DNA of 64,000 nt from Lepidodermella squamata (Eukaryota > Animalia > Gastrotricha), in contig JBLDXI010000009.1 of the NCBI GenBank assembly GCA_047495785.1, forward strand, positions 5,146,001-5,210,000. Direction: 5' to 3'. Under the pieces are notes generated by a model. It saw only the letters and a program-made list of their open reading frames with translations, was not told the origin of the DNA and ran no database searches. A program made the position numbers and the translations under genes. Of this stretch, positions 15,266 to 42,321 are shown one piece after another. Positions within the stretch are counted from its first letter, which is position 1. Each line of letters starts with the position of its first letter.

Positions 15266-18200
15266 ATGTTAACGGAAAACGTCACAAATGCTGAATCTGA
15301 CAATCAAACTAATAACAGCAACGCCCAGCCTTCGCCCCTGAAAGAAAACGGCGATGGTACGAGGTCGACGCGAGCTGACTCTCGCAGCTCGAAAAAGTCG
15401 TCGAATTCGTCGAAAAAATCCGGTAAAAGCGCGCAAAACGGCCAATCACCAACGAGCGAAAATGGCTCGTTGAAATCGGGCGAGAATAGCCAATTGAACT
15501 CGCCATCCAGCCCGCCTGATGCCGGCATGGAAAATCGAACGAGGCGGCGCTTGGCTGCTCGTTGCATAACCGCCTCAATGTCGACTGGCCGTTTTTTGAG
15601 TAAACTTGGCGTTTTGAAAGCTGAACACGTGACAGTTCGAAAATTGAGCCGGCTCGGCGTTGGGCCCGGCAAGTCGGAGGACATCGATGGAATTCGGTAT
15701 TTGAAGACAACGCTAGGCGGTGTGAAAGTGCGGATTTATTTGCCGGAGACGGCGGAACCGCTGAAAAACGGCTCGGTTTGCATTTACCTGCACGGCGGCG
15801 GGTGGGTCATTTCGTCGGCTCGCTGCTACCACCGGTTTACGGCGCTGTTCGCGCGCGATACGCAGACGGTTGTGATTAGCGTAGATTACAGGTTTGTCTA
15901 AATAATATTTCCTAATATTAATTTTTTTTCAAAATTCCCTGAATTTTTGCTCATCTGTCAATTTTTTCAGAAAAATGAGATTTTCGCAGTTGTCATGTTA
16001 GATAGTGGATCATATCTTAAGATTTTTAATGAAAATTAATAAGGACTCGGAATATTTCAAGGAAATGATAAATTTGCCAATTTCCACCACTACCTTGGCA
16101 TAGTTATTTGTCTCGATATCTACTCCTATCTTGGCTAGTTAATAAATTCTGTGGTTTTTATTGAGCAAATGACCAATGATATGGCCCGTCATTTTTTGCC
16201 TGCAATTTGATATCATAAATGACCGGCTGAACAAACTGAGCGTGTAGCGTGGTTTTCCATGGCCACGAGCCAGAGCTAACTGATCTTATCAAAAGTCACG
16301 TTAAAACGTATCGTCTCAGTAAGTTCTTGATGGCGCAATAAACTGCTTTTAGACAGGTCAAGAATTGAAATTGACGTTATTTAAATATTAATATGAGAGA
16401 ATGTTGATCAAAATGAGTCTTTCTGAATCAAATCAATTAGAAAATTCTTGGGTTGACATTTTAAAACAATCTTTTCAGAATTTCCATAACTGAAAAATTA
16501 TTACAAATTATGATATTATTCAGCTTGGTTTAATTGTATTTTATGATTTAAAATATTAGACTCGCTCCAGAACATCCATTTCCAGCCGGTCTAGACGACT
16601 GTTTAGCGGTAACTCGGGCAGTTCTCGACGGTGACTTCGACCCGGCTCTATTCTTCCCTCACTCGCTCGATCTAAATCGGGTAATTCTAGCCGGCGACTC
16701 GGCTGGCGGCAATCTGTCATGCGCGACCGCCCTCGACCTTATCCGCGATCGCGACTACCGGCTATTCGCCCTCATGCTGGTCTGCCCGGCCCTGCAGGCG
16801 GTCACGCTCAGTTTTCCTAGCTACAAAGAGCACGGCCCTTATCAACCGAGTGCGTTCAATTTTATTTGTTTTTTTTTCTTTTAATGAATGTGAGAGTTCA
16901 CTCATTCATTCAAATTTATCATCATCATAATCAACTCGGCACTTGAAAAACAAACATACATAAGAGTGTATTAGTTGCGTGACGGTCAAATTTTGACAAT
17001 TGAAGTTTTTTGGTTCGCATTCACGTGTTGGATGCTATCCATTCATCGCATCATCGCGCTTGGTCGGTGTTTTTCGAGGTAAATATTAATGATTCAATGC
17101 AAAACAACTGATGGTTATTTGTATACACCTGATTAAATAACATCTAAGCCGGTTAACTAGATACGGATTAATAGAAAAATTCGAACTATTACTCATACGA
17201 CACTGATGATTGATGATGCTAAAATTGAGTGATAAACTTGCTGTTGAAATTCGAATATCAAAGTGACTTTGAAAAGTTCTTGATGGGGGAGGACAGTGAC
17301 AGAATGTGCCGAAAGCACCGCCAACAGATCTTAACCAAAAGCGCTAGAGACATCAAGTAAAACGGGTGCAACCGGGGTAGACTCGGCAGTCAAGTTTGAG
17401 GGAGAAGCGTGAGATGGCGAATGGCGGGAGAAACGAAAAAACTCATCGATAAGCGATTGTCCGAGGTTGCCGGACTGCTTCGATTGTTCTATCCAATTGA
17501 AATCTGTCGTTTTCGATTCATCGATAACATTTTTGACACCTTTGATTTGATTGTCGTTCTACAGTCGCTCGATTTTCAGGTTGTTGAAATGAAAGGATTG
17601 TTGTTTTTTGATGGATGGTTGATTCCACAAAATATGGCGGCCTTTTTGTGCTAACTAACCTTTTGTGCCTTATCACCGATTCAGTCTTGGCTTGGCGAGC
17701 AGAGTTTTTCGGATAAACTTGGTTCACTGTGTACTTCGTCTCAGGCGAATCTACATGTAAAATGTCTAGGGCATCGATCTTCCATCATTCAGAAATCCGA
17801 AAAAAGAATATTTCAGATTTCAGATATTATTGCAAGATGAGAAATAAGCTTCCGTAACTTCGTGATTTAAAATTAATTGTAAAAGATTTTCTTATGGGCT
17901 CGAAGATTCAGTTAGCAAGGCAAAATTGATCAAAAGGCTTGACTTTTTGCCCCATGCTAGAATCACATGAAAACGACGCAGTAAAATTCTAGTGAGGCTT
18001 TTATCAATCAGTGAGCTGATTGCATCTCTCGCCTGTTTATCCTTATCAAGCATAACCGTTCTAATTTTTGTTTTCACGGACGGATTCCACTCATAGAAAA
18101 CACAACATGTTTGCTCGAAAACCTCGTGATTTTCATTCATTACTAAGCATGAAACACGGCTTGACCAGTGCCGGGATTGTTAGTGACACAAAATGTGACT

Positions 18201-19802
18201 AATTTCATCTTTCGGTCGTTGACTTTGTAAGTCCCTTCGGAAACAGCATTCCTTATCCCACCGCTTCATTCTACGAACTTGAATTGTTTCTCAACGATTT
18301 GCTACCTGATTCAGGGGTTTCAGTTACTCTTACTAGTGGAATATACTGATCGCTGATGGCGCAAACTACGCGTGCTAGTGGGATCTTATCTATTAGCCAT
18401 GGTTATTTAGAAATGGTATTCAAATGATCACGTGAAACTTGATGAAACATGTTTTGGGAAAACCTAGCGAGGAAACTCTACATTTTGGGCGTTCACTGTC
18501 CCTATCCATTCCAAACAACTGGCGTTTAAATTACCAAAATCTCACGAATATTTAGAATATAAATTAATGATTTGCTGTTTTCCCAAAATTTAGTCGGTCT
18601 CGATTGGTTCGTCCCTCGATATGCCGGTGTAAAACATGTGAATAAGAAGCTGATGGAGGCGTTTTGGCGCGGCACCCACCTGCCACCCGAGGACCGATCG
18701 ACACTATCGAGAACCGTCACAGTAGGCTCATTCAGCACAGCGACTTCCCCAACTTCGATCATAGCCCCATCACTGTCATCCGGTTCGTACGGCAATTTCC
18801 ACAACGGCGGCAGTTCCGCCGATCCGAATATTAGCAACACTAACAATGAAGATAATTACGACCCGGATTTCGACGGCGAATTCGAGGACGCACACGGCAA
18901 GCCTTTCTATTTCGAGGACGATATCGAACCCGCGCTAGGATCGCCCGAGAGTGAGCTGGTCAATGTCACGTCGATAGACCGGTCGGCGAACAGCACGACG
19001 GGGTCGGGCGGCGATGCCGGCTCGAGTTGCGCCGTCTCGCCGACGATGGGCGACGGCGCAGACGAAGAACTGTCGCCGTTTGTCATCAAGGCTGTGACGG
19101 ACTTGGCGCGCAACAAGCGCGCGTGGCCTCTGTTGGCCGACGACGAAGAGCTCAAGCACCTGCCGCACACTTTCATTCAAGTCTGCGGTATGTTGATTTC
19201 TCAAAATAATAATTTGAATATTGAATAATTTTTAAAAAATTTCAAAAATTTCTTGGAAATTCGGAAAATTATGAATTAAATTTTTGCGATTTTCCGAGAA
19301 TCAATCAGCAATTTATTTTAGCATATTTAGCTTTTTTAGCATTTTTAGCATATTTTTAGCTTATTAATTTCGAACGCATTTTGTCATAATTTTGAATTCT
19401 GATAGCTAAATCCAAAAAAGCTTGAATTTTATTGAAATTTAATCAGAATGTATCGAATATTAGGTCCTAAGCGATTTGATGTACATACTATATCGAATTT
19501 ACGTCACTGATGTGTTTATTATTTTTCATTCTTATTTTTGCGCAGAATGCGATCCCCTGAGATCTGAGAACGAGATATTCGGCGAGCGGATGGTGCGCGC
19601 CGGTGCCGCTAGCGTTCAAGTTTCACTGCTCGAAAAAGCCGGCCACATTGAGTCGCTGCTAGCGGAGCGATTTGCTACCAAGGTAGCCGTCCAGGGCTAC
19701 CGCGAACTCGTCGATTTTATCACGGCGTGCCACGCAAAACCGCGCTCGCTCGACGACTACAAAGAACCAGAGCTGTTCAGCCAAGTTACGGAATATTTTT
19801 AG
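15266..19802 (+). CDS. AADAC/NCEH1-like HSL-family alpha/beta hydrolase, copy 1 (intact triad)
   Basis: Exons 15266-15891, 16560-16849, 18594-19187 and 19546-19802. Motifs: [47 protein letters not shown] (Asp) and KAGHIE (His). An acidic/Ser-rich insertion of about 110 aa precedes AWPLLA. Confidence 0.9.
17520..18250 (-). mobile_element. Degraded Mutator-like (MULE) transposase fragment in intron 2 of hydrolase copy 1
   Basis: Minus-strand translation gives [31 protein letters not shown], a frameshift, then MNENHEVF...[36 protein letters not shown]. This fits the MULE pattern D-x-T-Y-K...D-x-D...A-I...C-x-x-H, with the first D->E and C->R. A SWIM-like FTCRF occurs near 17755. Stops and frameshifts are present. 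Confidence 0.75.
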
Positions 19803-21102: not shown

Positions 21103-23398
21103 ATGGCGGCGATTAATTACGGTGCAGACTTGGATGAGGTTAGTTGAATAAAATATCTTTTTTAAATTTTTGCTGAAATTTATGATATTTTCATAGGTTC
21201 AGATTCGCATGGATGAAGTTGCACCGCCCTCGCCCCATGTGCCACAAATCGTCATTCGACAGGCCACAATCGATCAAGAAGACGCACGATCTCAAGAGCG
21301 AGCCGTTGATATCGGCCAGCCAATTGCAATACCGCAAGTTCGAACCACCCAGCCGGTTGATTTCCCGCCCGAACAACCCACAGCCGTAAATCCACCAAAA
21401 CAACGGCCTAGCTCAGCTGTGGGTGAGAGAAAGCCAGAAACGGATAGATCAGATACTCCGCCGACTATTTCAACCACGAGACCGGACCCAGACGTGGTTT
21501 TAGTCACCCCACGGCCGCAATTGGACCACCCAATGCGGCGGAAAGTGTTCACAGGGTTCATCAAAGCTGCGCACAAAATCGGCTCAGCGTTCGGTCCTGG
21601 CGCCGCTGTTTCAATGGTGAGAAAAGCGAATCGATTATCATCAGGCGGTCTGTGGGCTACACGAGTTTCGGGAGTGCGGTGTCACCAGACGCGTTTCGCG
21701 CAGTTCAAATTGCGGCTATATTACCCGAAATCGGACGATGCGGCTCAACCTCATCTGAAACACCCTGTCGTTGTGTATGTCCACGGCAATTTGCCGTATT
21801 CGAACGCGAGGACTTACCACTCGTTTACTGGCCAGTTGTGTCATGATTTGCTAGAAACTGGCTGTGTTGTGATCGCCCTAGACCTTCCGCCATGTCCTGA
21901 GGTGTGTTGAACTATTTTCACTTCCATCTTTCCATAAAATCCTTTTACACTTACACGGGAAAATGTTGAGAAATTCCTATTAAATTGAGATAATTGAGTG
22001 CTAGATAGGAAATTCTAATCAACTTTGGGCCGAATATTTTAAGCTAAATCAGCGTAAAGTCCTTAGTTTCTCGTTGAAAATATTTTTTCCATTTCGTTCA
22101 GATTTTGATTTAAAATTCATTTGAATTGACATTATTTTTCACGGATTTATGAAAATATTTCGAAATTTTGGATTAGTTGATGAGTTTTCAAATTTCTTTC
22201 GAAATCAGCAAGCTAGAATGTTCAATTTTTCTAAAATCCGTTCTATCTTTTTTAGAACACTCTCACGCAAATATTGGCTGACGTTCGCCAATTTACCGAA
22301 GCATTACTCCGCGGTGAATTCGATGAAGATCTCCTAACATTCGGCTTCAATATCTGCCACGAAAAGGTCGTTCTAGCCGGCGATGGCGCTGGGGCTGTCG
22401 CCTGTTTCGCGACCGCGATCGAGCTGGCTCTAGTCCACGATGGTGAACGAGTTGAACTGCACGGCCTGCTCCTCATCGGCCCGCCCCTCCAAGCCCTCAC
22501 GCTTCAAATGTTCGAAAGCCACCTGAAATTCGCGCAGCTGAACTCGTCGGCTCTATCGCATAAACTGAACAAATGCCTGCCGTTGTATGGCGGGCTGAAG
22601 CTGAAATCGCAAGTCGAACTCGTGCGACAGGCGGTGAAAGCTGAGCGGCACATAGCTAGCGATGTCAGGGCGCGGCTTCTGCGCCGTATTTTTCCAACTT
22701 ATGAAACACCGAACAGCGCCCCAGGGCCAGAATTGACCGGCTTTTTGAACGACATTAGCGATCTAGCGAGTGATCCGAAAATTTGGCCAATGTTGATGAA
22801 GAACAAGGAACTGCAATTGGTAATTAAAATTTCTTGAAAATTTTCCTCAATTTTTTGTCAAAATCAATGTTGAAAATTGATGTAAATCTTAGTAACTATG
22901 AAATTATGGCTTCAGCTCTAATTTTGTCTGATTTTTTGCATTTGCTTTCAAGAAAAATATTTTTCGAAATATTTTTGAATTTTTGAATTAAATTTGGATT
23001 TTCTTTGAATTTTACAACATAAATTCTGATTTATCCATAATCTGTTTCAGCTTCCAATGACGATGATGCAGGCCTATGAGAATGATACACTTTTCGACGA
23101 GCAGCGGCTGTTTGCGAAGCGCATGTCTCGCGTCTGCGGTTACCGGTTTCGCTTTTCGGCCGTCGAAAACGCGACTCACAACGAGGCCGTGTACTCGAAG
23201 CTGCTCAAGTCACGTTCCGGCTCGAGCGCCTACCGCGAACTGGTCGACTTCCTGAAAGAAACCATCGCGAAACCGCCGCAACAGAACCAAGCCTCGGGCG
23301 CTTTACGACCGGCGAAACGAGCGTCGATGGGCCTGCTTCACAACCAGCAACAAGTGTCAATAAGCGTTGGTTCTGTGCCTGAAAGTTACGAATGTTGA
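21103..23398 (+). CDS. AADAC-like hydrolase, copy 2; predicted catalytically inactive (nucleophile Ser->Gly, oxyanion motif lost)
   Basis: Exons 21103-21138, 21197-21901, 22256-22819 and 23051-23398, frame intact. HGNLPY replaces HGGGWV, DLPPCPE replaces DYRLAPE and GDGAGA (Gly codon 22385-22387) replaces GDSAGG. Asp (ENDTL) and His (ATHNE) are retained. Confidence 0.88.
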
Positions 23399-23740
23399 GA
23401 AAAAACCAACTTTAATGTCGCTTCAGAAGAACTTGAAACTGTGATTTGTTACCTCATTTTTCACTTTCTCAATGCAAAACGATTTTGTTAAATTTTCATT
23501 TTCTGGTGCTTTCACATGGCTGCAAAAATTGCAAATTGTTTAATTTTTGTCGAAAAAATCATCACTTTCTATTGTTGGAGAATATTTTCTCACGGCTTCT
23601 CTAATGTGATCTAGAGGTATTTTTGATCAAAAGAAAATTCACATATATTTTTATTGAATATATTTTTATTAACAAGAGACCTTATTAATTTATGGATTTT
23701 AATTTTTTAGGTTTTTATTATTTTGAAAAATGCATTGAAA

Positions 23741-25194
23741 ATGCTGAGAAGCTCGGCCGTTGATGAAATTTCACCGGTCGAAATGCCTGAAGTCGCCGAG
23801 CAATATATTCATTTCGAGCAGGTAATACATTTTATTTCATAACTCATTTTCTGATCCTTTTTCTTGAAATTCGACTTCATTTTTAGAATAATAGAGCAAA
23901 AAGTCTGCTTGAAAATGAAACTAGACGAAAAATTGCTCGTAGCCTGGTTCGATTCGCCTCGTGTGTCTCTTCCATCTGCGAACGGCGACTAAAAATCCGA
24001 AATGCCGAGGTTCGAACTCTTCGCACAATCAGCCGGTTGCCTGGTTTATTTCTGCCCAAAATCGCCGGAGTCACATGCTCAACTACGAAAATTCGCGACA
24101 TTCCTGTTCGAATCTATCGGCCAGATGGTCAAAATTCGAGAAAAAACGCGAAAAACAAGTCGAATTCCGGCAAATATTCCATGCCAGACGGCGTGCCAAA
24201 ATCCTACGGTTGTGTCATTTATTTCCACGGAGGCGGGTTTTGCCTTTCATCAGCTCGTTCAATTCATAATTTCACCGCTAATTTATGCGCTCAAAGTCAG
24301 GTTATCGTCATTTCAGTCGACTATCGACTAGCCCCGGAAAATCCATTTCCAGCCGGTTTTGAGGATTGCTTGAAAGTTACTCGGGCCATTTTAGACCAAG
24401 TCCCAATTGATGTGTTGCCCGAGTACTACATCGATAGAAATCGAGTGATTCTAGCCGGTGATTGTTGCGGTGGGACTTATGCTATTAGTGTAGCGCTAGA
24501 ATTAGGCCGGAACCCTGCCTCGAAAAAACTCCACGGTCTAGTCGCAATCTGCCCAATTTTACAAGCAATTACCTTCAAGTACATGCCTTCGTACCAAAAA
24601 GTTGATCGAAAATCAATTTCTCGCCTCGATTTTCGGCCTGATTACGATTTGCCACGATTAGCCGGGTCGATACGGTTGGCTAAATTCATTCGAAATGATT
24701 TAATTTTGAAAAATGAGGATTATTCACGATTTTTGAGAATTATTTTCGGCGACGATTTTTCGGTTGAAGTCGATAAAATTATCAAGTCTTTCGACGAAAA
24801 ACTTGCGAATCTAGTGTCAAACTGTCGTTTTTGGCCTCTATTAGCTGATTACGACGAACTAGCCACATTGCCGAGTAGTTTCATGCTACAGGCCTGTGAC
24901 CACGACGCACTGCTGTCTGAGCAACACATTTTTGTCCAGAAGTTGCGTGAAAAAGTCAATAAACCTGTTGAATTTTGTTTACTCGAGTGCGCGGCACATT
25001 GTGAACCTGTTCGCTATTACAACGAGACGCAATCTGCTCGGCTTGGTTTCACTAAACTTGTGCAATTCCTGCGAGATGCAATGGCCCGACCGCCTAACAG
25101 CGACCCTGTGATATCTTCAATTGAAATTCATGTTTCGAGCGTCGAAGAAGTTCAAGCTGAGCTCGATGAAATTGCGCCGCGAGTTTTGGCTTGA
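23741..25194 (+). CDS. AADAC-like hydrolase, copy 3; Cys at the nucleophile position (GDCCG)
   Basis: Exons 23741-23821 and 23887-25194. Motifs: YFHGGGFC, VDYRLAPENPFPAGFEDC, GDCCGG (TGT at 24463-24465), RFWPLLAD, CDHDAL (Asp) and AAHCE (His). The catalytic domain has no introns. Confidence 0.9.
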
Positions 25195-26853: not shown

Positions 26854-29486
26854 ATGACGAACGAATCGACTGGAGACGATAAGCAGCCGCTGGAACCGAG
26901 CGCATCGCCCGAACCCGCGCTGACAACCGCCACCGTCCAGCACCACGAATCGACCACGGACGAAACCGCACCGATTGTCGTGACGATCAGCAGCAACCAG
27001 AACCTAACGGCGCCGGGCCACGAGAAAACGTGCCTGAAATCGCCGACGAAATCCGAACGCTCGCTCGTCCCAGTGCCGACGAACACGACCCAAAAAGCGG
27101 CGATTGTCCCGCCGGCGTCGAAGAAACAGCACCTGGAGCAGCGACTGAGGCGCCACGTGATGTGGGGCGCCATGAATCTAGCCGTGGTCTGCGGGCGCGT
27201 TCTGGCGAAACTCGGCGCGAAAAACGCGGCTCATCTCGCGCTGAGGAAGACGGCCCGGCTAGGCGGGGGCGTTAAGCGCGCCGTTCTACCCGGAATCGCG
27301 CATTCAAAGGTCAGGATTGCCGGCGTGAAGTGCCGCGTCTACTCGCCGGTTGAGGAGAATTCGACCCCGAAGCCCGTGCTGATCTACCTGCACGGCGGCG
27401 GCTGGGTGATTTGCTCGGCGCGGTCTTACCACCCGTTTGCGCTGGGCCTGGCCAGGGACACGGGGGCTATCGTCGTCACGGTCGACTACCGCCTCGCGCC
27501 GGAGAACCCGTACCCGGCCGGCCTGGAGGATTGCCTGGCTGTGACCAAGTCGCTGCTAGAAAACGAAAACGAAGCCCTGCCCGAGGAGTTGAAGGGCAAA
27601 ATCGACCCGGCTCGCGTGGTGCTCGGCGGCGATTCTGCCGGGGGTAACCTGGCCGCCTGCGTCGCGCTCGACCTCATCCGGGCCGGGGATGAGCGCCTGC
27701 ATGCGATAATGCTGGTCTGCCCGGTCCTGCAGGCCATTACTCAGGAGTTCGAGTCATTTCGCAAATTTGGCAAGCACTCAAATGTTGGCATCAGTTGGTT
27801 CCTATCGCAGTACGCGGGTGTTGTGGCGCCGCGGCGGAAGCTGTTACGCTTGATTGACCAGGGCCGGCATATTTCGGATGAAACGAGCCAGAAATTGCGG
27901 GTCAAGTACCTGGCGGTTGCTGACGCGGCGGCGAATCCTGGGCAGAGTCTGGCGCCGGATTCCGGGTGCCAAACCGCCAGTTCTTCGCTGCCGAGCCCGA
28001 ATTCGAACAACCCGGTTGTAGTCGCCGAGGTTGTAAAATCGGCCGCCAGCCCACTGCCAGGTACTGACAACCCGGCGCTGGAGGACGAGAAGGCGGCTAA
28101 GGTGAATGAGGGCGGGCCGTTGGTCGTTACGGCCACGCCAGGTGTTACGGAGGAGACTGGGCACGGCAGTAACGTGGAGACGGAGCAGTTGATTGAAAAG
28201 GGCAGCGATGTGCCGGAGGCGTTGACTGAACTCGCGACAACGGTCCGCGCCTGGCCTCTACTTGCCGAGGATTCGGAACTTGCCAAGGTAAGAAAATATA
28301 TTCATTCAAATGAATTAATTTGACTAAACCAGACCGAGTTTTGGGGTCAAAGTCCGGTTTAAGCAGAGAAAGAAGCCGAGCTTACAGAGGATTTGGCAAT
28401 AGATACCTCAACAATTTTCACATTTTAAATAGGCCAATCATCCTGGATACAGCGTGTCCCAAAAAGCAAGCAAAGAAAATTCACGAAAAGGGATCAAACA
28501 TTTTAAAATGAGATATCTCATTCAATGTGCCAATGTTCAATAAGTCAATGTGCCATTAAGAATATTAATTTACAATGTCACTCACAATGGGATTCAAAAA
28601 AATCCGGAGAAATTTGGCCCAACCAGGTATAATACCGAACCTGTTACCATCGGGGTTTTCCGGGTTTTCTTCGGTAAATTCGTGGATGAAGGATGGAATA
28701 TTCTCACGGTAGGCTTTAATTAAAAAATTCGTACACAAATTTGCAAAATTGAGAAGTAGTACTGCGCAACTTTAGGGACACGCTGTATATATTTATATAA
28801 TTTATGTGGAAATGTATGAATTAATTTTACACGAAAATGACTTTCGCTCAAAATTGTCATGAATGGTTTGAGGTAAAATTGATTGAATTTTGAAATGAAA
28901 TTTTTGCTATTGTCTTTCATTTTAGATTCCACAATTACCTCTTTCATTAACCAAATCAATAAAAATGTTTAGGAGAATATGCAACTTGAATTAACATTTT
29001 GGAAATTTAATTTTCTCATCTTAGTAAGAATATTAGAATTTTGATAAAGTTTTTTGGTTTTTAACCCATTTTCCAAATTATATTGAGGACTTATACGCTC
29101 AACTAATTCTTTCTGTGTGATTAATAAACTAACAGATGCCGATAACTATGGTGCAAGTATGCGCTGAAGATCCCCTACTCGAGGAGGGCCGCATTTTCGC
29201 CGAGCGGCTGAAATCAGCCGGCGCCCGCGATGTCCGCTACTTCTTCCTGCCCCGCGCGCAACACGCCGAGGCAGTTCTACGAAACATGCTGCACTCGAAG
29301 GCGGCGAAGCGCGGCTATGCCGAAATCGTGTCGTTTTTCAAGGACGTGACCGGCCTGGACGCCGAGCACAAGGAACCGACCGGGCACCTGGACGTCGAAC
29401 CAACCACGCCGGCGCCTCTCCAGCCGATCATCGAAGCCATCGATTCGACTAGTCTGGCCAATCAAGCGGAACCGATTACAGCCTAG
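26854..29486 (+). CDS. AADAC-like hydrolase, copy 4 (intact triad)
   Basis: Exons 26854-28287 and 29136-29486. Motifs: HGGGWV, DYRLAPENPYP, GDSAGG, RAWPLLAED, CAEDPL and AQHAE. A low-complexity insertion of about 100 aa precedes AWPLLA. Confidence 0.92.
28450..28785. mobile_element. Tc1/mariner-type MITE in the intron of hydrolase copy 4
   Basis: TA|CAGCGTGTCCC ... GGGACACGCTG|TA: an 11-bp perfect TIR with a TA duplication and a non-coding interior. Confidence 0.7.
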
Positions 29487-30968: not shown

Positions 30969-33458
30969 ATGGCAACTACTGCGAACGATGATGACGGCGA
31001 AATTAAGCCGGTTTGCAATGGCAATGGCCATCACCATCATTACCCAGCCGAGCAATCAGCCGACGGTGATTCCGGCGATGAAGACGACCGAATTCGAGCC
31101 GATGCCGAGATAGGCGCTATGTTTGTTATGGACCTGAAAGAAACAGCCGGTGCTGGGTCAGATTCCGAATCAGAACCCGATGACCACGAGGATGAATTGA
31201 CGAAATTAGCCGCTGGGGGAGATGTTCACATCACGCATAAACACCACAAAAAGCATGTCGAGAGGCGAGTACATCGCAGCATAATTTGGGGCTCGATCGC
31301 GTGGTTTCTTGCCGGTGGCCGGTTTTTGTCCAAAATCGGAGTAAAAGGTGCGAAAAACATATTTCAAATTTTGTTATAACTAAAAAAATTGACCAAAAAT
31401 TCTCAAAATTTTCTAAAATAATATGTCGAAATTTCCCTCAAAAAATTCAAAATTTTGTTTCAATTCGAAATTTTTTAAATTTAAATGTTTAATTTTAGGT
31501 GCTCAAATTGGTGCTCTTCGACGCGTTTGCGCAATCAGTGGCGGTTTGCGGCGACCCGAACTTCCCGAGGTGAAATTTTTCAAGGCCCGAATCGCCGGCG
31601 TGAAGTGTCGAATTTTCCGCCCAGCTGACCAGCAACCGGGCACAAAACTACCCGTTGTCATTTATATCCACGGCGGCGGTTGGATAATGTGTACAGCGCG
31701 GACTTACCACGCATTCACGCTTGAATTTTGCCGCGATTTAAAATGCGTCGTTGTTTCGATTGATTACCGATTGGCACCCGAACACCCGTTTCCGAACGGG
31801 TTGGACGACTGTTTAGGCGTGACTCGAGCGATTTTAAGTGCGGATGATAATCCTCATGAGGTCGGACCCGAACTGGCAGGATGGATCGATGTTAAAAAAG
31901 TCATAATCGGAGGCGATTCAGGTAAAAAAAACCCGCAATTTTTCTGCAAATTTTCGAAAAATTAATTTCAATTCAATATTTTCACTTCGAAAATGTCTTC
32001 AAATTTCAAAAATTCGAATTTCAACATTTCTAAATTTAAATTTTTCGTTTTTTTTTCATTTTTCTAAATTTTTTAATTTGTTATAGCCGGTGGAAATTTG
32101 TCTTGCGCAACGGCGCTTGACCTGATTCGCTCGAATGACCTGAGCAATAAGCTCTACGCACTAGTCATGATTTGCCCATCAGTTCAAGCCGTTTCAACGC
32201 GTTTCCAGTCATTTCAAACGTACGGCCGGCATTCAACCGCCAGATCCGGCTGGTTCTTGTCGCTGTACGCCGGGCACAACGACCCAAAAGCTAGGATTGT
32301 CAGCGCGTGTAAACACGGCAAACACGTGCCGGACGATTTTTTGCGGCGATTTAACGAAAAATATGTCGATAATTGGCTGACGAGCGAGGTCGAAAATCCG
32401 TCCGAGCCGCTGGTACCACCGAATGATTTTTCGAACTTGGTGATACCGGCCCATTTTGTTCCTGAGGCAATCACAAAACTGGCGCTATCAGCTCGAGCGT
32501 GGCCAATGTTAGCCAGCGACGAAGACCTGGTCAAGGTAAATAAGCTATAAATTTGGATTTCAATACTCAAAGTCGAAAAAAACTCCCCCTTAGAGCGTAA
32601 TAATTATCGATTACTTTAATCGATACACTTGATTTTCAAAAATCGAAAATAATATCACGATAAAATGCATTCATTAATCGGGTCCTAACAGAAATCTATC
32701 AAGAATTATATTTCACGCCTGAAATGGCCAGAATTATCGAATCGATAGATATTTTTTTTTTCATTATTTTAAGATTTTTTCATTTTACACAGCGCAAATC
32801 GCTCTTTTTTAGATTGCCTCAATCCGAAGGGCTGATTCAGGTTTGAGGGCTCATTTTTGTCTGATAAGGGTCTGTGTCATCGTTAGGCAATATCCGACCC
32901 CCTGCCATAGCACATAGCAATATGCGCAATATGCGCTCATTATCATACTATGAATCATTCTGATGATGAACTCCTTCCTATTATAAGTAGTAGAAGGGCG
33001 TTATCAAGAATAAATTTGAAAATTGAAAATTGAAATAGAGCAAAAATTAGAAAAATTTGATTAAAAATTCTAAATATCGAATAATTTTAAATTTCAAAAA
33101 TAGTAAAAATTTTCCCAATTTTTTCAAATTTTTGTAATTTCTGTCATAATTTTTTCAATAGCTACCACCGACCTTTGTTCAAGCGTGCTCTGACGATACG
33201 CTGAAAGATGAAGATGCAGTTTTTGCCGAGCGATTACGGCGCATCGGCGCCAATGTGCGCTACGCCTACGTGCCGCGGTCGCAGCACTGCGAGCCCGTCT
33301 TCCACAATACGATCCCGACGAAAGCAGCCCGGCTCGGCTACAGTCAAATATGTGCATTCATCCGTGACGTGTTGACACGGCCGATGAGCAAAAAACCGAG
33401 TAAAGCCGATTTATTGGCTAGGCAAACGCCTATTGTAACTACACCGTCTTCGAATTAG
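30969..33458 (+). CDS. AADAC-like hydrolase, copy 5 (intact triad)
   Basis: Exons 30969-31347, 31499-31921, 32087-32535 and 33162-33458. Motifs: [20 protein letters not shown]|AGG split by a phase-1 intron, RAWPMLASD, CSDDTL and SQHCE. The N-terminus is acidic and His-rich. Confidence 0.92.
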
Positions 33459-35043: not shown

Positions 35044-35399
35044 ATGGCGGTCAAAATGCTGCTGGTTTTCGCCCTGGCCGTTGGTCGCACCAGTGCTACG
35101 GCGGCTACTAAGTTATTCGAGATTATAATCTGTAAAACTAAGGTTACATTTCGGCATTTCAACTAGCTCTATCCTTGTTCACGCAGCAAAAGCTGAACTG
35201 CAAAGGTCAGCAAGAGCCGACGAATATTGTCCGCAATCTGCGTCTGGCGGGCTGCGCAGATGAATGCTACAAATGGCCCAGTTGTAACGCTTTCATCTTC
35301 GATAGTGCTACGCGGCAATGTCAATTTCTGCCTGACTGCGAGAAAAGTGGATTGATCACAGTGAGCCAGGTTCACTACACCAGAAATATCAGCCAGTAA
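35044..35399 (+). CDS. Small secreted single PAN/apple-domain protein, copy 1 (homologous donor reads CT; possible pseudogene)
   Basis: Signal peptide MAVKMLLVFALAVG. Exon 2 (35167-35399) encodes a 6-Cys PAN pattern: C-x14-CADEC-x4-CNAFIF-x6-C-x4-C-x9-VHYT. The expected donor at 35108 is CTAAGT; using it gives a 59-nt intron, the same length as in the paralog. Confidence 0.7.
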
Positions 35400-36001
35400 A
35401 CGGCCAAATAACAGCCACTATGCTCTGCATAATATGAGCAACTATTTTTCAAGGAATCCTCATGACTAGAATGCACTCTCTTAGGTAAAAGTTGTTCTTG
35501 AAAGTTGGGAAGATTTGCCATTTCGAATCATTATTCTTCCTTCGAATGATCATTATTTTTTTCTGAAAACGCTCTAACTGGCTTCTCCGCACGTCGATCG
35601 TCGATCACAGCACATGTCCCCAATATATCACCTACATTAAGTGCTCTAGTTAGGTCTAATAAAACACGTGCCAGTCATTATTAAGTACGGATGGTCATCC
35701 GTACTTAGCTTTTCACATTTCCATAAATTATAACAGTAAAACAAATTTAGCAAGGAAAGGGGACATTGTTTTTTGTCCTCAGTTCAAAGTTCGGTGGTGA
35801 TTAACAAAATGGGACAGCCATCTCAAAATAGCACCTAGGCATATCATTGAGCCGACACGCCACTGACAGATGAACAAACCAAGGCGGAGAAGGGAAGCAT
35901 TCAATAGCGATGAATAACATTTCTCACACATTTACAGTTTTTCGCGCCCTGAACACAACAGTCTTATTCTCTTTTTTTTACCGAAACCAAATTATTGCTT
36001 C

Positions 36002-36336
36002 ATGGCCGTCAAAATGCTGTTGGTTCTCGCCCTGATCGTCGGGCTCGCCCAGGCTCAGAGTATGTTTCGCAATTGGTTGCTATCAAATTGGGTAATTATA
36101 CGGTTGATTTATCAACAGATATCCTCAAGTTCACCCAGCAAACGCTGAGCTGCGGAACACCCTTAACGGTTAATACGGTAAGCACGCTGGAGGGATGTGC
36201 CACTAGTTGCACTAACAACCGCTTCAAGTGCAAGGCATTCAGCTTCGACGCCAAGGCTTCCGGTTGCGGGTTCTTGATGACCTGCGCCAAGAACGGCGCC
36301 ATACCTGCAGGCCAGGTCCATTACACCCTGAACTAG
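36002..36336 (+). CDS. Small secreted single PAN/apple-domain protein, copy 2 (91 aa)
   Basis: Exons 36002-36059 and 36119-36336 with a 59-nt GT-AG intron. Protein: MAVKMLLVLALIVGLAQAQNILKFTQQTLSCGTPLTVNTVSTLEGCATSCTNNRFKCKAFSFDAKASGCGFLMTCAKNGAIPAGQVHYTLN. It has the PAN consensus CxxxC...CxxFxF...C. Confidence 0.85.
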
Positions 36337-39300
36337 AATTGGCGAGACCGCCGTCGCAGCAGCCGCGCCCGTTCAGTACGATCAGTACCTAATAATGGTG
36401 TAGTAGATCGTTCGCCTAATTCAAAATCTAATTAGTATTACTTATTATCGCCGCATATACAGTTATTGGCTTCCGCTTGAAGCTATTTCTCGTTGCACAT
36501 ATCTTACCTTAAAACTGCTACAGCTTATCTTATTTAATAACACGTACTGATCGCCTATAGTTTGTTTAAAGGCCATAGCTGCAGGAAATTGTCAAAAATG
36601 CTGAAACGACTTTGATGATCGGAGGCTACTTGACTTTTGCAATGTAAATATGCGCGTATAATAACAGGTTTTGGGTTATGGTTAACGTAAAACTGCATAA
36701 ATAAACGCTCGTCCCGAGGAAAATAGCCGCAACGGTGCCATATTCCGAAAAATGATCTTGAATCTCAAAGTTGAAACCGGTACAAGTATGACTAGTATGT
36801 TCTATCTCATCGCCTTATATACACCAAATGCCATCAGACCAGAATGGCATTCAGCCGTGAAAAATGTCTCACGCAAATGAAACAAATCCGGAGCAATCCG
36901 GCCGAGTCAGGTGAAATAACGGAAATTACTGAACCAGCAGTTATCATCGGTTTTTCCGAATCGGTGTCGGTAAATTTTACTTCATTTTCTACGGTAAAAT
37001 GCCAGTTATTAGACGGGAAATGTTATTCGTGGGATTCAGTTTGGGAAATTAGATTGATCGTAAAAAGGGCAGACAACCACAATACAGCAAACGCGACAAA
37101 ACAGCGAGAAATTATATGTAACAGATGCAATATGTTGTTGCTGTTTTGTCGCTTTTGAGCTTCTCTATACGTTCTTGCTGTTTCAGCGCCGTGCCGTCAA
37201 AAGTGGCAGATTCCAAAATGGGACCAAACTGTATGCGTAAAAATCCTTCTTTCAGGCTACAGTCACCTAGGCCCGGCGACTTCAATGTTGAAAATTTGGA
37301 AACCAATCGAATTTTCGATTGTTTCCCTATATTTTGTCCGCTACTTTTTCGTTTATTTTTATATTTTTTTGTGGACAGGTTTTTTTCGAATTGCTCTAGC
37401 GACCCTGCTGCACTAAGTATAATTATTTCGTTCTCGTTTACACCTTTTCGTGTGATTTTTTATCAGAATATCTTATAGCGGAACAAAATCGGCATTTTGC
37501 GGAACCTAATTTTAGGTATAAGCGAAAGGTCGCTTTTTGAATATTTCTATTAAATTGAGGCAATGCATGAATTCTATATAGTGAAGAATGCGTCTTTAAC
37601 AGAATTTTACGCTGAATTTACTGATGATTTAGGTATTTCAAGTTACGCTAATAAAGCATGACGATCTTGAAAGCTTCAAAAAGTGGCTTTAGGCTCATAA
37701 AAATTCCAAAATTTGGTTCCGCAAAAAGTAAGACCCATTTTTATTACATTTTTTATCATGACTGAAGGCTGTTCAGCTATATCCATTACACATCAGTCTT
37801 TGCTAAAATGTCACACGTTCCTGACGAATTTCCGCCCACCTGCCCCACGCTGGTTCCAGTTACGAATACCGTGTTCTACTGATATCACTTTGTTAGCGGT
37901 GAGTCGCCACGACCAGGCCCCGCGCAGTGACCTTTCATCTCCACCTGTCACGCCCGTCTTTTTCTATTACCCCCATGAATATTTAACGGTGCGATACAGC
38001 GCTGGATCCCAAAATAATGTAAACATATTTTTATGACATTTGTGACGCATGCTTTTTCTTCCTTATACATCTTATGAAATATCGCCTAAAAATGCACGGA
38101 TTTTATCTTAACCACGCCTATCTTTCCGCTCTACTGATTAGCAATCCGGCTATATAATAAAAAACGAGGATGAAGAATAAAAAAACAGTAATCAGAAACC
38201 GGTTTATGGACTTAACGTTTTTTTCCCCTATTATATATGTCTCGAGCCTTATCGTGCAAATTTTAAAGTGGTTTTTTCGACAGAAAAATCTAGAAAATTT
38301 CGCTAAAAAAATAAACCCGTCATTCAATATCGGCGGAAGTAATTGCCTCGTAGCGCGCGCGCAAAAAAAGCGGCGGTGGTTTTTTCCGCATTTGCCTATA
38401 TGCCGTAATATTGTGTTGTTATGTACAGAGTGAGTAAGGCGCCGGCAACGTGAACTGGCTCTATTGGACATATTGCCGGCGCGCGTAAAAAATAACATAC
38501 CATACATATATAGGCATTAATAATAATAATATTAGTGCATGAGTGCGCCTGGTTTTTTCTACGCCGTTCGCACTCTATATAGCGAGTACGAAGCGTGATG
38601 AACACGTGAGTCGAGATTATAATAATAATAATGCTGCTGCTGCTTCAGCGTGCATACAAAATGTATATAGTCTAATACAGAGAACGTTTTCTAGATTCTT
38701 CCATGCAACCTGTTGCATAACAAATTTTTTCTATATATGCGCGCGCGCAGAATTTGACAGTTTTTTCTTGTTCATTGTATCGCGATTTTTTTTATGAGGA
38801 GACATTTTTTGCAATTACACCGTTAACAAAATTTTGGCAGCCATTTATCTGATATACAAGATAACAGTATCAAAGTAAAGTCAATTTCACTCATATTATC
38901 ATCAGGGTGGTCACCAGGGTTTCAAAAAATGAATTCGATCAATATTTTGGACGTAAGCCAAAGCGCAGTAAATTTGATAGTTTTATCCAGGTTCCGCACT
39001 AGTTAAATGGCAATTTTTATTAAAAAATGGTCTCATTACTTGATCGTCTAATATTTTTAGAATTTTTGGTATATTTAGTACCTGACTTACCTGTTCATTA
39101 GCGTGAAATTTGATTTAATATCACGATGCAAAAATCATTCATTAAAAAATCAAAAATAGTAATAAAAAAATACGCTAAACAATTAAGCGCACTAATTTTT
39201 TTATCGAGGGAGCAAAAATTAGCGAGACCGTCACGATTTCTCAGGGCGTTACGTCATAACGTCGCTCAATAATCGCCGGTCAAGTTACATCATATCATAA

Positions 39301-39468
39301 CAAGATTATTATCAGTTTCATTCACAAAAACGTGCCTTAAATACGATCCTTCTTTCTCCCCATTTCGAGTCGAATTTTGTAGCTTGATATTTTTCAATTT
39401 TTCTGTTACATTTCCCTGCCCTATTTTTATATAGCTTCTTTTTACTGTGATAACATAATTAATAATCA

Positions 39469-42321
39469 ATGAACCGAGACCGGAACATGAAAGTCAGTCA
39501 ATCGATGCGCAATTTCTCCATGGAGAAATTCGATAAATTCGAGAATAAGCAGACATCGAATGAATCATCGCCGACGCCATCAGCCCGCGGCTACCTGCGC
39601 CGGTCGATGAGCCAGGGCGGCTACAAGGACGACTCGGATGACAAGCGATCCGCGTCCTCGCTCAGTGGCGACTCAGGCTTCGACGACGCGTCGCAAAAAT
39701 CGTCACCGCAGAAAGAAGCAGTCACCGATGTGGAAAATCAGCCGGTGAAAAACGCGCACAAGCCGGGTGTTGAACGTCGGTACTACCGAAGCTTGGTGTG
39801 GGGCAGCATCTACGGGTTCATAAAATGCGGCCAGGCTTTGGCGAGGCTGGGCGTTAAGAACGCGCACCTCGCTGCTATGCGAAGCGTGACGAAGATAAGC
39901 GCGGCGGTTTCGCGCGCCGAGCAGCAAGCCGCTGAGGAGACGCATTTTTTCAAAACCCAAATCGCCGGCGTGAAGTGCCGATTTTATCGGCCCAAGTCGC
40001 AGAAGCCCGGCTCGCGGCTGCCCGTTGTTATCTACATCCACGGCGGCGGCTGGGTGATGTGTTCGACGCGAACCTATCACGCTTTCACGCTTGAGTTGTG
40101 CCGTGACCTAGGCGCTATTGTTGTGTCGATTGATTACAGACTCGCGCCGGAATGTCCATATCCTGGGCCACTCGATGACTGCTTAGCCGTGACAAAGGCG
40201 ATTCTTAACGGTGATACTAATCCCAAGGCGCTTGGGTCAAAAATCGCTGATTACATTGACTGCAGCCGCATTCTAATTGCTGGAGATTCAGGTAAAATAA
40301 ATTCAACAATTCATGAAAAAATTCGGAAAATACCCGAAAATTATCTGAATACATCCGACAAATCGTTAAAAAATTTTAGAAAATTTAAAATCGTTTAAAA
40401 AAATTTTAAAATTTGAATTTGAAATTTTAAAATTTTAAAATGTCTCAAATTTCAGAGAACATTCCTAAAATTTTCGAAATAATTTGTTGTTAAAATGAAA
40501 AAACCAAATGTTGAATTTTCATAATTTTTCTAAATTTTTTAAATTCTTCTAAATTTCAAAATTTTCAGTTTTCCTCTTAAAACTCTATTTTTCTTTGTTA
40601 CCTATGATTTTTCTTCTAATTATAGCTGGTGGAAATATGGCGTGTAGCGTAGCGTTGGAACTGACACGCATGGCTGCACAAGATCGACCTTCAAACAGCC
40701 TCGCCGGGGTCGCGCTAATTTGCCCCGTCCTTCAAGCGATCTCAACCCGCTTCGAATCCCACCAGAAGTACGGCGCCAACGCAAGCGCGTCGTGCGGCTG
40801 GTTTCTATCCATGTACAGCGGCATCGCCGACCCGCCGGCCGAGTTGACACGCGCCGTGAAAACGGGTCGCCACGTGTCACCGCGCGTACTGCACGCCTTC
40901 AATCAGCACTACATCGACAAATGGGACACGCTCGGCGATAAGGCCGATCTGTCGCTGCACATTCCGCAAGACGAGGCCGACGTCGAGGTGCCGGGCATTC
41001 CGCAACAAGTCACACGCCTGTCCGTCGACCGTCGCGCTTGGCCGCTTCTCGCCACTGATGAAGAACTCGCTCAGGTAAATAGCAAAATAATTACTTGAAA
41101 GTTGAAACCGCTCATCAGCGTAGAAATGGTGAAAAGGGAAATGGGACATAGTTCTGAAAAAATCCGAAAATGAACTCTACAGAGGTTTCAGCATTTAAGG
41201 AATCGGAGGTTCCATTTAAGATTCAAATTAGGGTTCCAGCGCTTAATTTGCAAAAACCTGGTAATATTTCTGAAAAATTCGAAATGGAACCTTTAACCAA
41301 CTTTACAAAGGTTTCAGATTTAGGGAATATTATTCAAAAAATCCGAATATGATCTTTTAACCAACTTTTTTAAAAGGTTCCAGCATTCAGAGAAGTGATG
41401 CTTCCAGTTAGAGTTTAAATGTAGGGATCCAGCGCTCAGTTCTCCTCAAATTCGAAATAATTATGAAAAATCCGGGATTGAACTTTCAACCAACTTTGCT
41501 AAGGTTCCGGCATTTAGGGAATTGATGGTTCCGTTTAGGGTTCCAGCGCTCAGTTCCCCAAAATTTAATATTAATAAAAAACTCGAAAATGAACTTTTAG
41601 GTAACTTTGAAAAGGTTCCAGCTTTCAGATAAGTTAAGGTTCCATTAAGGTTACAAATTTGAAAATCCGAACTCAGTCCCCGAAAATTCTAAATAATTCT
41701 GTAAATATCCAAAATTAAGGTTCCAAACAACTTCAATGAAGCCTCAATTTTATGGATGAATATGTACCGAATTGTAAATTTGAATTAAATTAGAATTTTT
41801 GGTTTTTCAGAAAATTAAATTTCTTGGATTTTTGGCTTTCTTCTAAAGATTCTTTCAACTAGTTTAGAATGACCTTTTGATGCAAATAAAGGGCAAAAAG
41901 CGTATTTTCATGCGGCGAGAAAAATTTCTATAATTTTGCAAACAAAGAAATGATTTCTCTGAAGAAAAGTGCAACAAGGTGGTTTTAAACTGGAATTACC
42001 GCGTTTCCTTTTTCCAATCAGTTGATTTTTTATTTAATATTTTTCTAGCTTCCATCGTTGATGATTCAAACGTGCTCGCACGATGCGTTGAACGACGAAG
42101 GCGGCGTGTTTGCGGAACGGCTGCGGCGGCTGGGCCACCGCGTGGCGCGGCAGCACCTGGTGCGCGCCGAGCACTGCGAGTCCATTTTCCACCGCACGTT
42201 CCCGACGCGGGCGGCTCGCAGTGGCTACCTGCGCTTCTGCGACTACATCCGCGGCATTCTGTTCGAAAGCAGTGACATCCGATCGGAGCAGCGGCAAGAA
42301 CAACCGAGCCGTTATATATAA
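39469..42321 (+). CDS. AADAC-like hydrolase, copy 6 (intact triad; closest to copy 5)
   Basis: Exons 39469-40291, 40626-41074 and 42049-42321. Motifs: HGGGWV, DYRLAPECPYP, GDS|AGG (same intron as copy 5), RAWPLLATD, CSHDAL and AEHCE. Confidence 0.92.
41155..41735. repeat. Degenerate tandem repeat (unit roughly 115-130 bp, about 4-5 copies) in the last intron of hydrolase copy 6
   Basis: A block of the form aaaatccgaa..tgaac...aaccaacttt...aaggttccagcatttag...ggttccagcgctcagtt recurs at regular spacing. Confidence 0.65.

Follow-up and report, generated by a model that had tools for sequence, protein, structure and literature searches.

Between positions 15266 and 42321 of the 64,000-nucleotide window (the whole stretch of DNA analysed here), the + strand carries six AADAC/NCEH1-like paralogs (PF07859), c1 to c6, all co-oriented and with intact frames. 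All six gene models have canonical GT-AG introns, no internal stops and a terminal stop.

The first copy, c1 (588 aa, + strand), has four exons (15266-15891, 16560-16849, 18594-19187 and 19546-19802), the first of which matches PF07859, and combines HGGG, GDSAG, Asp506 and HIE. It carries a Ser/Thr-rich N-terminal extension of about 90 aa and a long low-complexity insert ahead of RAWPLLA. The c2 gene (534 aa, + strand; exons 21209-21901, 22256-22819 and 23051-23398) encodes GDGAG (22379-22393), Asp431 and HNE (23177-23185). Its oxyanion motif is degenerate: HGGG is replaced by HGN-LP (21782-21793), one residue being deleted after HGN. The DYRLAPE.PFP block is missing as well, and the original prediction had overlooked both losses. 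Only 342 bp separate its stop from the start of c3 (462 aa, + strand; exons 23741-23821 and 23887-25194), in which HGGG, Asp367 and HCE (24997-25005; His398) accompany a GDCCG elbow (24457-24471) with Cys218.

Further downstream, c4 (594 aa, + strand; exons 26854-28287 and 29136-29486) has HGGG, GDSAG, Asp490 and HAE, and a disordered insert of about 100 aa. This insert contains the island PDSGCQTASSSLPSP, which the c4 ortholog P0121 has in identical form. This invariant island resembles a DSGxxS/T phosphodegron. The last two copies are c5 (515 aa, + strand; four exons, 30969-31347, 31499-31921, 32087-32535 and 33162-33458), with HGGG, GDSAG, Asp429 and HCE, and c6 (514 aa, + strand; three exons, 39469-40291, 40626-41074 and 42049-42321), with HGGG, GDSAG, Asp436 and HCE. 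In both, a phase-1 intron cuts the elbow at the same position, between GDS and AG. An unrelated gene on the + strand separates c5 from c6 and so splits the array; its PAN/apple-domain ORFs (35175-36336; PF00024 matches) lie outside the esterase family. The proposed six-gene cluster thus holds as a set of six co-oriented, intact paralogs, but the array is interrupted. A tblastn search found no seventh copy within the window.

The gene models bear out the six elbows of the original prediction, as well as H-x-E around the catalytic His in 6/6 copies. The catalytic Asp is likewise found in all six. Four of the six copies (c1, c4, c5 and c6) have a complete set of HGGG, GxSxG, Asp and His, c3 lacks the Ser, and c2 lacks both the Ser and HGGG. 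Because every catalytic element is kept in these four (HGGG, GDSAG, Asp, His), they are predicted to be active carboxyl or lipid ester hydrolases; c1, on its motifs, is a predicted active serine hydrolase. H-x-E in place of HG is not peculiar to the cluster but marks a whole lineage-specific family. It occurs in at least 17 paralogs genome-wide, including anchor-bearing ones elsewhere in the genome, and in related proteins of another species; about 230 other family members lack it.

Family, fold and age of the array

PF07859 matches and the RAWPLLA cap motif support the assignment to an AADAC/NCEH1-like family. Exon ORFs of c1, c3, c4, c5 and c6 match PF07859 in Pfam with E values of 1.5e-9 to 6e-40. 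Taken one by one, the c2 exons are not recognised; the full-length c2 ortholog P0248 passes the cut-off of 25 with 59 bits. The AlphaFold2 model of c3 has a pLDDT of 85 and a pTM of 0.88. For the c2 type, the fold evidence is a model of the ortholog P0248 rather than of c2; this model shows an HSL-type hydrolase fold with a pLDDT of 82 overall and above 90 over the domain. Foldseek matched both models to EST2, AFEST, EstE1, Aes and other HSL-family esterases with a probability of 1.0.

The named sequences closest to the cluster copies are AADAC/NCEH1-like. Within the HSL family (PF07859), AADAC, NCEH1 (KIAA1363) and AADACL2-4 make up the branch found in animals. The cluster has in common with AADAC/NCEH1 the domain, HGGG, GDSAG, the placing of Asp and His, an enlarged cap with R-A-x-P-L-L-A...L-P and the helix just past the anchor. 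Unlike AADAC, none of the six copies has the anchor, and each bears a hydrophilic extension of 37-107 aa; H-x-E replaces H-G, two copies have no Ser, and some contain disordered inserts of about 100 aa. In our tree, all paralogs from the same genome and the relatives' proteins form one clade (SH-aLRT 100), separate from other animal members and joined to them in an unresolved polytomy; the cluster copies have the cap motif RAxPLLA...LP. This clade contains an anchor-bearing subclade (C21, C28 and C13g8) and an anchor-less subclade with c1-c6.

The cluster is old, since c2, c3, c4 and c5/6 each have an ortholog in a relative, at 39-50% identity. The pairs c2-P0248 (support 100/100), c3-P0001 (95/93) and c4-P0121 (100/99) are recovered in the tree, and c5 and c6 group with P0122 (100/99). 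Identity is 50% overall for c4-P0121 and 39-43% for the c2 and c3 pairs. Moreover, relatives of the c2, c3, c4 and c5 types are recorded on contigs with matching lengths (68,691 and 21,199 bp); these genes probably lie on one contig in the relative, which would mean conserved linkage. The array probably represents an old tandem expansion in a lineage-specific branch of AADAC/NCEH1-like esterases (HSL family, PF07859).

The serine-less copies c2 and c3

The c2 and c3 lineages are sister groups and form a single serine-less clade (support 97/98). At the nucleophile position c2 has Gly, P0248 Ala, c3 Cys and P0001 Gly, with Ser in 0/4, and this distribution across one clade makes a single old loss of Ser the simplest account. 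P0248 shares with c2 the degenerate HGNLP, the Asp and THNE, and its elbow reads GDAAG. The c3 ortholog P0001/P0241 has a GDGCG elbow and HGGA; the P0001 model is truncated, and the comparison covers its elbow and oxyanion motif.

Identity between c2 and P0248 is 63% from WPLL to the His and 43% from the oxyanion motif to the elbow, against 69% and 68% over the same two stretches in the active pair c4-P0121. Tree distances are 1.25-1.38 for the dead pairs versus 0.64-1.16 for the active pairs. The c2 frame has 0 internal stops where 21 are expected, and its GC content is 0.54 in the coding sequence versus 0.26 in introns. The non-canonical members noted in the original prediction are kept rather than decaying: c2 and c3 both have orthologs, and P0248 folds confidently. 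The nucleophilic Ser is absent from c2, P0248, c3 and P0001, the ORFs are intact, and the sequence and the c2-type fold are kept across species. We conclude that c2 is a conserved pseudoenzyme and c3 a probable one, a thiol hydrolase being less likely.

We hypothesise that the common ancestor of c2 and c3 lost its nucleophilic Ser before the split from the distant relative, and that the position has since changed from one small residue to another (Gly, Ala, Cys, Gly), with constraint persisting on the fold, the cap and the Asp-His half. The role of c2 and c3 would then be non-catalytic, namely the binding of a ligand (lipid or ester-like) or of a partner protein. Our preferred reading, to which we give a probability of about 65%, is that the array encodes four cytosolic serine esterases and two maintained pseudoenzymes with the binding role just described.

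Could c3 instead be a working hydrolase with Cys218 as nucleophile of a Cys-Asp-His triad, leaving the cluster with only one dead copy? The Cys falls precisely on the nucleophile position of a confidently modelled protein that retains HGGG, Asp367 and His398, and its TGT codon is a one-base change from the TCT Ser codons of the active copies. However, the ortholog P0001/P0241 combines Gly at the nucleophile position with HGGA, c3 joins the clearly dead c2 lineage, the rate of evolution in the c3-P0001 pair is about double that of the c4 pair, and the GC3 of c3 is the lowest of the six (0.41, with the highest, 0.75, in c4). A catalytic role of Cys218 is unlikely on this evidence; the residue, the single Cys of the original prediction, is not conserved in the ortholog and is probably not catalytic.

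It is also doubtful that the six genes work together as one module, along the lines of the original prediction, with the dead copies as GID1-like small-molecule receptors or as obligate partners of the active enzymes. Such a module would fit the probable linkage of dead and active types in the distant relative, the short c2-c3 gap, and the kept fold of c2 with its strongly constrained cap and Asp-His half. Yet tandem duplicates remain linked without functional coupling, the array is divided by the PAN-domain gene, and the close active paralogs C25A, C25B and C45 are located on other contigs. The comparison with GID1, the plant gibberellin receptor, in which the HSL-family fold serves as a non-catalytic binder and an N-terminal lid closes over the ligand, fails residue by residue. 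GID1 has kept Ser and Asp and lost the His, whereas c2 and c3 show the opposite pattern, with Ser lost and Asp and His kept, and the origins are independent. GID1 structures are absent among the listed structural matches of the c3 and P0248 models.

That c2 and c3 are unexpressed, decaying pseudogenes is very improbable: Ser is gone from both, their branches are longer, and c2 additionally lacks HGGG and the DYRLAPE block and fails Pfam exon by exon, but ORFs and splice sites are intact in both copies, c2 is free of the expected stops and shows a strong exon/intron GC contrast, the orthologs conserve lineage-specific motifs at 39-43% identity, and a c2-type protein folds with a pLDDT above 90 over the domain.

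N-terminal extensions and topology

AADAC sits in the ER membrane with type II topology, its active site facing the lumen (PMC12078129). The N-terminal parts of c1-c6 have a top 19-residue Kyte-Doolittle mean of 0.64-1.38 and contain no transmembrane-grade segment, whereas the anchor-bearing paralogs C21, C28 and C13g8 reach 1.9-2.65. In line with the original prediction, an AADAC/NCEH1 signal anchor is found in 0/6 copies, and the alignment sets the AADAC anchor against hydrophilic extensions. These extensions run for 90-107 aa ahead of the basic helix in five of the six copies and for 37 aa in c3. They had been described as unrelated, disordered N-termini; they are unrelated among paralogs but have conserved islands common to orthologs.

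The basic amphipathic helix itself aligns with the AADAC segment just past the anchor. In the c3 and P0248 models it is confident (pLDDT 86-94) and lies where HSL-type esterases have their first N-terminal cap helix, which makes it an inherited component of the fold. We propose that this branch exchanged the type II signal anchor at the N-terminus of its ancestor for a hydrophilic, largely disordered extension. Judging solely by the missing hydrophobic anchor, the proteins are most likely cytosolic or peripherally associated with membranes or lipid droplets, rather than ER-lumenal.

The helix could conversely be read as an internal signal anchor, basic and then hydrophobic, behind a long cytosolic N-tail, so that the proteins would still be ER-membrane or lumenal like AADAC. 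Arg/Lys clusters precede it in a positive-inside pattern, and in c4 and c5 it is moderately hydrophobic (1.38 and 1.15), with 13-14 mostly apolar residues. Against this, none of the six copies attains the hydropathy of the truly anchored paralogs, Arg and Lys also lie inside the helix, and both its alignment with the post-anchor segment and its modelled place in the cap identify it as part of the domain. We consider an ER-lumenal location improbable and retain the cytosolic or peripheral assignment.

Relation to LIPE and ABHD5

LIPE belongs to the same superfamily branch, has no signal anchor and bears an N-terminal extension. Its regulatory module with phosphorylation sites (aa 521-669) lies between Ser424 and Asp693 (PMC3031774), and c1 and c4 have Ser/Thr-rich inserts in the same Ser-Asp interval. 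A Pfam scan found no HSL_N (PF06350) in the N-terminal exon ORFs of c1, c2, c4 and c6, and two canonical HSL genes with HSL_N are present elsewhere in the genome (C1:3.94 Mb). The resemblance to LIPE is thus convergent architecture, not orthology. The cluster as an HSL (LIPE) ortholog was ruled out, the HSL_N-bearing canonical genes being at another locus.

For c2 and c3, the best functional analogy is ABHD5/CGI-58, a pseudoenzyme that arose by duplication of the active ABHD4 and lost the catalytic Ser, with the fold and a pseudosubstrate pocket kept; its contact with membranes is made by an insertion segment and by an N-terminal region that is disordered and carries a Trp (bioRxiv 10.1101/2025.05.06.652485). 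By this analogy alone, c2 and c3 probably have a binding or regulatory role. ABHD5 sits in a different alpha/beta-hydrolase subfamily.

In a more far-reaching scenario, which we put forward as speculative and rather unlikely, the anchor-less branch (c1-c6 with C25A, C25B and C45) would have evolved from an AADAC-type ancestor of the ER lumen into a cytosolic lipolysis system, HSL-like but of independent origin. Conserved motifs in the disordered N-tails and cap inserts (e.g. PDSGCQTASSSLPSP) would control its active members, and the linked c2 and c3 would be ABHD5-like co-factors or ligand sensors for their active neighbours.

Esterases of the AADAC/NCEH1 type are known as anchor-bearing hydrolases of drugs and lipids in the ER lumen. 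This lineage appears to have been stripped of its anchor, to have gained disordered tails and inserts, and to have kept a serine-less pair beside active paralogs over long evolutionary time. A full-text literature search that combined "arylacetamide deacetylase" with "pseudoenzyme" gave no paper. If followed up, the array could provide a natural topology switch, from lumenal to probably cytosolic, within one enzyme family and an added pseudoenzyme lineage for the animal HSL family. The Gly, Ala, Cys and Gly at the elbows of the serine-less proteins illustrate the need of the turn for a small residue even after catalysis is lost.

Catalytic motifs and layout of the cluster

The two longest open frames served as tblastn queries against the window, G000:C9:5146001–5210000, and matched six homologous loci (c1–c6). 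Every one of these lies on the + strand, within 15.4–42.3 kb; the remainder of the window gave no match. The cluster runs from the start codon of c1 at position 15266 to the stop codon of c6 at position 42321. Exon–intron models rest on open reading frames and splice signals, together with gap-free alignments to paralogs that do not have the intron concerned; splice junctions were set by hand from sequence, frames and these alignments. Database searches used individual exons, and the spliced models entered local alignments and trees. The six translations (588, 534, 462, 594, 515 and 514 aa for c1–c6, respectively) contain no internal stops. Pfam searches assigned exon ORFs of c1, c3, c4, c5 and c6 to PF07859 (Abhydrolase_3), with E-values down to 6e-40; searched exon by exon, c2 gave no PF07859 match. 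No protein of the window was itself present in the large protein collection searched; the best relatives were ENA or Logan proteins, and named matches from rotifers, Lingula and vertebrates reached at most 43% identity over part of the query.

Motif states were read from an alignment with bird AADAC, fish NCEH1, rat AADACL2 and about 250 further family members. The oxyanion motif is HGGG in all copies except c2, where a one-residue deletion leaves HGN-LP. The nucleophile elbow reads GDSAG in c1, c4, c5 and c6, GDGAG in c2 and GDCCG in c3. The catalytic Asp is present in 6/6 copies, and the catalytic His lies in HIE (c1), HNE (c2), HAE (c4) and HCE (c3, c5 and c6). Complete catalytic sets are thus found in c1, c4, c5 and c6, and the nucleophile is missing from c2 and c3. 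These alignments confirm the elbows and H-x-E motifs described in the original prediction, the interpretation of which is partly supported by the results below.

The sequence has a GC content of about 40%, and the genes carry short GT-AG introns, the positions of which are shared only in part among the six copies. A phase-0 intron ahead of ‘LP..F.Q.C’ occurs in c2, c4, c5 and c6, a phase-1 intron separating GDS from AG is found in c5 and c6 only, and the only intron of c3 is short and follows codon 27. Introns of the six genes have a GC content of 0.25–0.35. GC3 differs between the paralogs (c4 0.75, c6 0.68, c1 0.63, c2 0.56, c5 0.53, c3 0.41), a spread that may reflect expression level. In all six copies, a pyrimidine-rich, acceptor-like site ending in AG is located 12–57 nt upstream of the ATG, at 31 nt in c3, hinting at 5′UTR introns or trans-splicing. 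A genome search for nematode SL1 RNA detected none among the 50 of 31,633 candidates that were scored. The c2 stop and c3 start are separated by 342 bp (window 23399–23740), a spacer in which AATAAA was not found; co-transcription of c2 and c3 is possible.

Between c5 and c6 lies an unrelated gene on the + strand with two PAN/apple-domain ORFs (PF00024; window 35175–36336). Directly upstream of c1, an intronless + strand ORF of 717 aa (window 12247–14400) encodes a beta-PIX/ARHGEF7-type protein with SH3, RhoGEF, PH and betaPIX coiled-coil domains. Further upstream, an exon on the – strand (window 9740–10414) encodes EF-hands joined to a mitochondrial carrier repeat, as in calcium-binding mitochondrial carriers.

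Age and maintenance of the serine-less copies

Orthologs in a relative were retrieved by word-based searches with c3 and c4. As Pfam and a word search with c2 exon 2, which returned no matches, had left c2 open, this exon was used in an exhaustive HMMER search; two of its matches, P0249 and P0250, were discarded as repetitive, unrelated proteins. In the IQ-TREE ortholog tree (ultrafast bootstrap and SH-aLRT support in brackets), c2 pairs with P0248 (100/100), c3 with the truncated protein model P0001 (95/93), c4 with P0121 (100/99), and c5 and c6 together with P0122 (100/99). Two paralogs on other contigs of the same genome, C45 and C25B, pair with P0002 (100/99) and P0124 (100/100), respectively. 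The c2 and c3 pairs group together (97/98). This topology rules out a recent duplication as the origin of c2 and c3, and the cluster is a set of old, conserved paralogs. For each of the relative’s proteins of c2-, c3-, c4- and c5-type, the listed contig is 68,691 bp long; for 99%-identical variants of the c2-, c3- and c4-types, it is 21,199 bp. Judged solely from these equal contig sizes, linkage is likely conserved in the relative.

The nucleophile position is occupied by Gly in c2, Ala in P0248, Cys in c3 and Gly in its ortholog P0001/P0241. Active copies use TCN codons for the catalytic Ser, c3 has TGT and c2 has GGC, so that a change from Ser takes one step to reach Cys and two to reach Gly, with the order of events lying beyond parsimony. 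In the simplest history suggested by these residues, the Ser was lost once, before c2 and c3 arose by duplication, and the position then drifted between small residues. Such a history argues that c3 carries its Cys incidentally and not as a conserved alternative nucleophile, and the weight originally placed on the Cys elbow is not upheld, the orthologous position being Gly in P0001/P0241.

Several lines of evidence indicate that the serine-less copies are maintained. The c2 frame contains 0 internal stops in 534 codons, against a mean of 21 in shuffled sequences and 22 and 26 in the other two frames, and GC content is 54% in its exons versus 26% in its introns. Its ortholog P0248 belongs to the same length class (523 aa) and matches PF07859 over the whole protein with 59 bits. 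Both share the degenerate oxyanion motif ‘HGNLP’ and the motifs ‘VKAERHI’, ‘RLLRRIFP.YE’, ‘KIWPML.KNK.L.LLP’, ‘DTLFDEQRLF’, ‘RFRFS’ and ‘ATHNE’. From WPLL to the His, c2 and P0248 are 63% identical, and between the oxyanion motif and the elbow 43%, compared with 69% and 68% over the same two intervals in the active pair c4/P0121. Constraint on c2 has thus moved off the nucleophile half, with the cap and the Asp–His half still conserved. Distances between orthologs are 1.25 for the c2 pair and 1.38 for the c3 pair, versus 0.64–1.16 in five active pairs; by this measure, the serine-less pairs appear to evolve faster, and clearly not neutrally. The long stem of the c2 lineage (0.70) suggests that it changed rapidly early on.

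For folding, c2 was represented by P0248, the AlphaFold model of which has pLDDT >90 over most of residues 85–510 and HSL-family esterases as its best structural matches. The same matches were obtained with a confident model of c3 (exon 2, 435 aa; pLDDT 85, pTM 0.88).

The lineage and its N-termini

We built a tree of own-genome copies and further AADAC/NCEH1-like proteins from animals, rooted against bacterial sequences as outgroups, in which paralogs outside the window were entered as chained tblastn segments, not curated models. Own-genome copies and the relative’s proteins form one clade (SH-aLRT 100) that divides in two. Subclade A comprises C13, C21 and C28 (named by contig) and has a classical N-terminal signal anchor wherever the first exon is readable, for example MIKHIAVFVTSVLVALISIQW in C21, MAKLLMALALVAVLVSFILSSF in C28 and MGIAIKLSIVAALLAIGTW in C13g8; the 19-residue hydropathy of these anchors is 1.9–2.65. 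Subclade B comprises c1–c6, C25A, C25B and C45 and has no anchor. The original interpretation is supported in part, in that the lineage is a real AADAC-like family of its own, lacking the anchor and including maintained non-catalytic members; a functional module of active and inactive copies would be a speculative extension.

A six-frame profile search of the genome (121 Mb, 151 contigs) detected 62 PF07859-matching exons, and the strongest loci beyond the window were read for motifs. About eight AADAC-like genes of the anchor-bearing subclade form another tandem array, on the – strand at G000:C13:~210000–228000 (loci L031, L032, L039 and L040); GESAG occurs in one of them, and three arose by very recent duplication. 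Other paralogs are two genes on C25, one each on C45 and C21, and an identical pair on C28 and C33. The latter (PGGL, GDDTG, HDD; G000:C28:1446231–1447384, – strand, and G000:C33:594788–595942, + strand; loci L037 and L038) has a real N-terminal signal anchor and is a second, independent non-canonical copy. Over the matched 338 aa, C28 and C33 are identical, reflecting either haplotigs or recent duplication.

All paralogs readable at the His have H-x-E (HVE, HIE, HSE, HGE or HCE), except the C28/C33 gene. In 233 further family members, H-G is found in 153 and Phe at His+2 in 173; H-x-E is confined to P0002 and its near-identical variants, proteins related to this lineage. H-x-E is thus not a mark of the window cluster and bears less weight than it was assigned; the paralogs on C13, C21, C25 and C45 and the family alignment rule out such specificity and identify a family-wide signature.

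The predicted absence of an AADAC-type signal anchor from all six window copies is corroborated by hydropathy and alignment: the maximum 19-residue hydropathy ahead of the oxyanion motif is 0.64–1.38, and the AADAC anchor sits opposite hydrophilic sequence. The amphipathic, basic helix of the six copies has a net charge of +5 to +8 and a hydrophobic moment of 0.37–0.70. It aligns to the AADAC segment immediately after the anchor (‘EEPWK...LG’), and both models (c3 and P0248) place a helix of 23–25 residues (pLDDT 86–94) at the position of the first cap helix. The helix is therefore an inherited structural element of the fold; on alignment, hydropathy and the c3 model, the idea of a new membrane anchor was rejected.

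Extensions preceding the helix measure 90–107 aa, with only 37 aa in c3, and consist of 59–87% polar or disorder-promoting residues; in the P0248 model, residues 1–65 have pLDDT <50. Described as unrelated, these N-termini are indeed unalignable between paralogs, but orthologs share conserved islands: ‘KKQHLEQR.RRH’ and ‘SPTKS’ in c4/P0121, and ‘DLKETAG’ in c5/P0122. In addition, c4 carries a low-complexity insert of ~100 aa between the nucleophile and the Asp. Overall identity between c4 and P0121 is only 50%, yet a 15-residue island in this insert, PDSGCQTASSSLPSP (window 27870–27914), is identical in both, the surrounding disordered insert being unconserved. The island resembles a DSGxxS/T phosphodegron, and a DSGxxT-like motif, DSGIET, is found at the same place in paralog C25A.

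Putative roles and known parallels

By analogy with AADAC/NCEH1, c1, c4, c5 and c6 would act as carboxyl or neutral-lipid ester hydrolases, probably on the cytosolic side, where the Trp-bearing basic helix and the cap might bring them to membranes or lipid droplets. For c2 and c3, a role in binding is suggested. Their closest precedent, ABHD5/CGI-58, likewise kept its fold: this pseudoenzyme derives from a duplicate of ABHD4 that lost the catalytic Ser, still has a pseudosubstrate pocket and acts as a regulator of PNPLA lipases (bioRxiv 10.1101/2025.05.06.652485). The suggested analogy with the plant receptor GID1 fits less well, since the pattern of loss is reversed: c2 and c3 have lost the Ser and kept the His.

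The Ser/Thr-rich tails and inserts with their conserved islands could be regulatory. In hormone-sensitive lipase, all phosphorylation sites lie in a regulatory module that interrupts the stretch from the catalytic Ser to the Asp (PMC3031774), a parallel in insert architecture with the window copies. This parallel is convergent, since the genome holds two tandem canonical hormone-sensitive-lipase genes elsewhere, each with HSL_N followed by PF07859 (G000:C1:3939594–3948557, + strand; loci L044 and L045).
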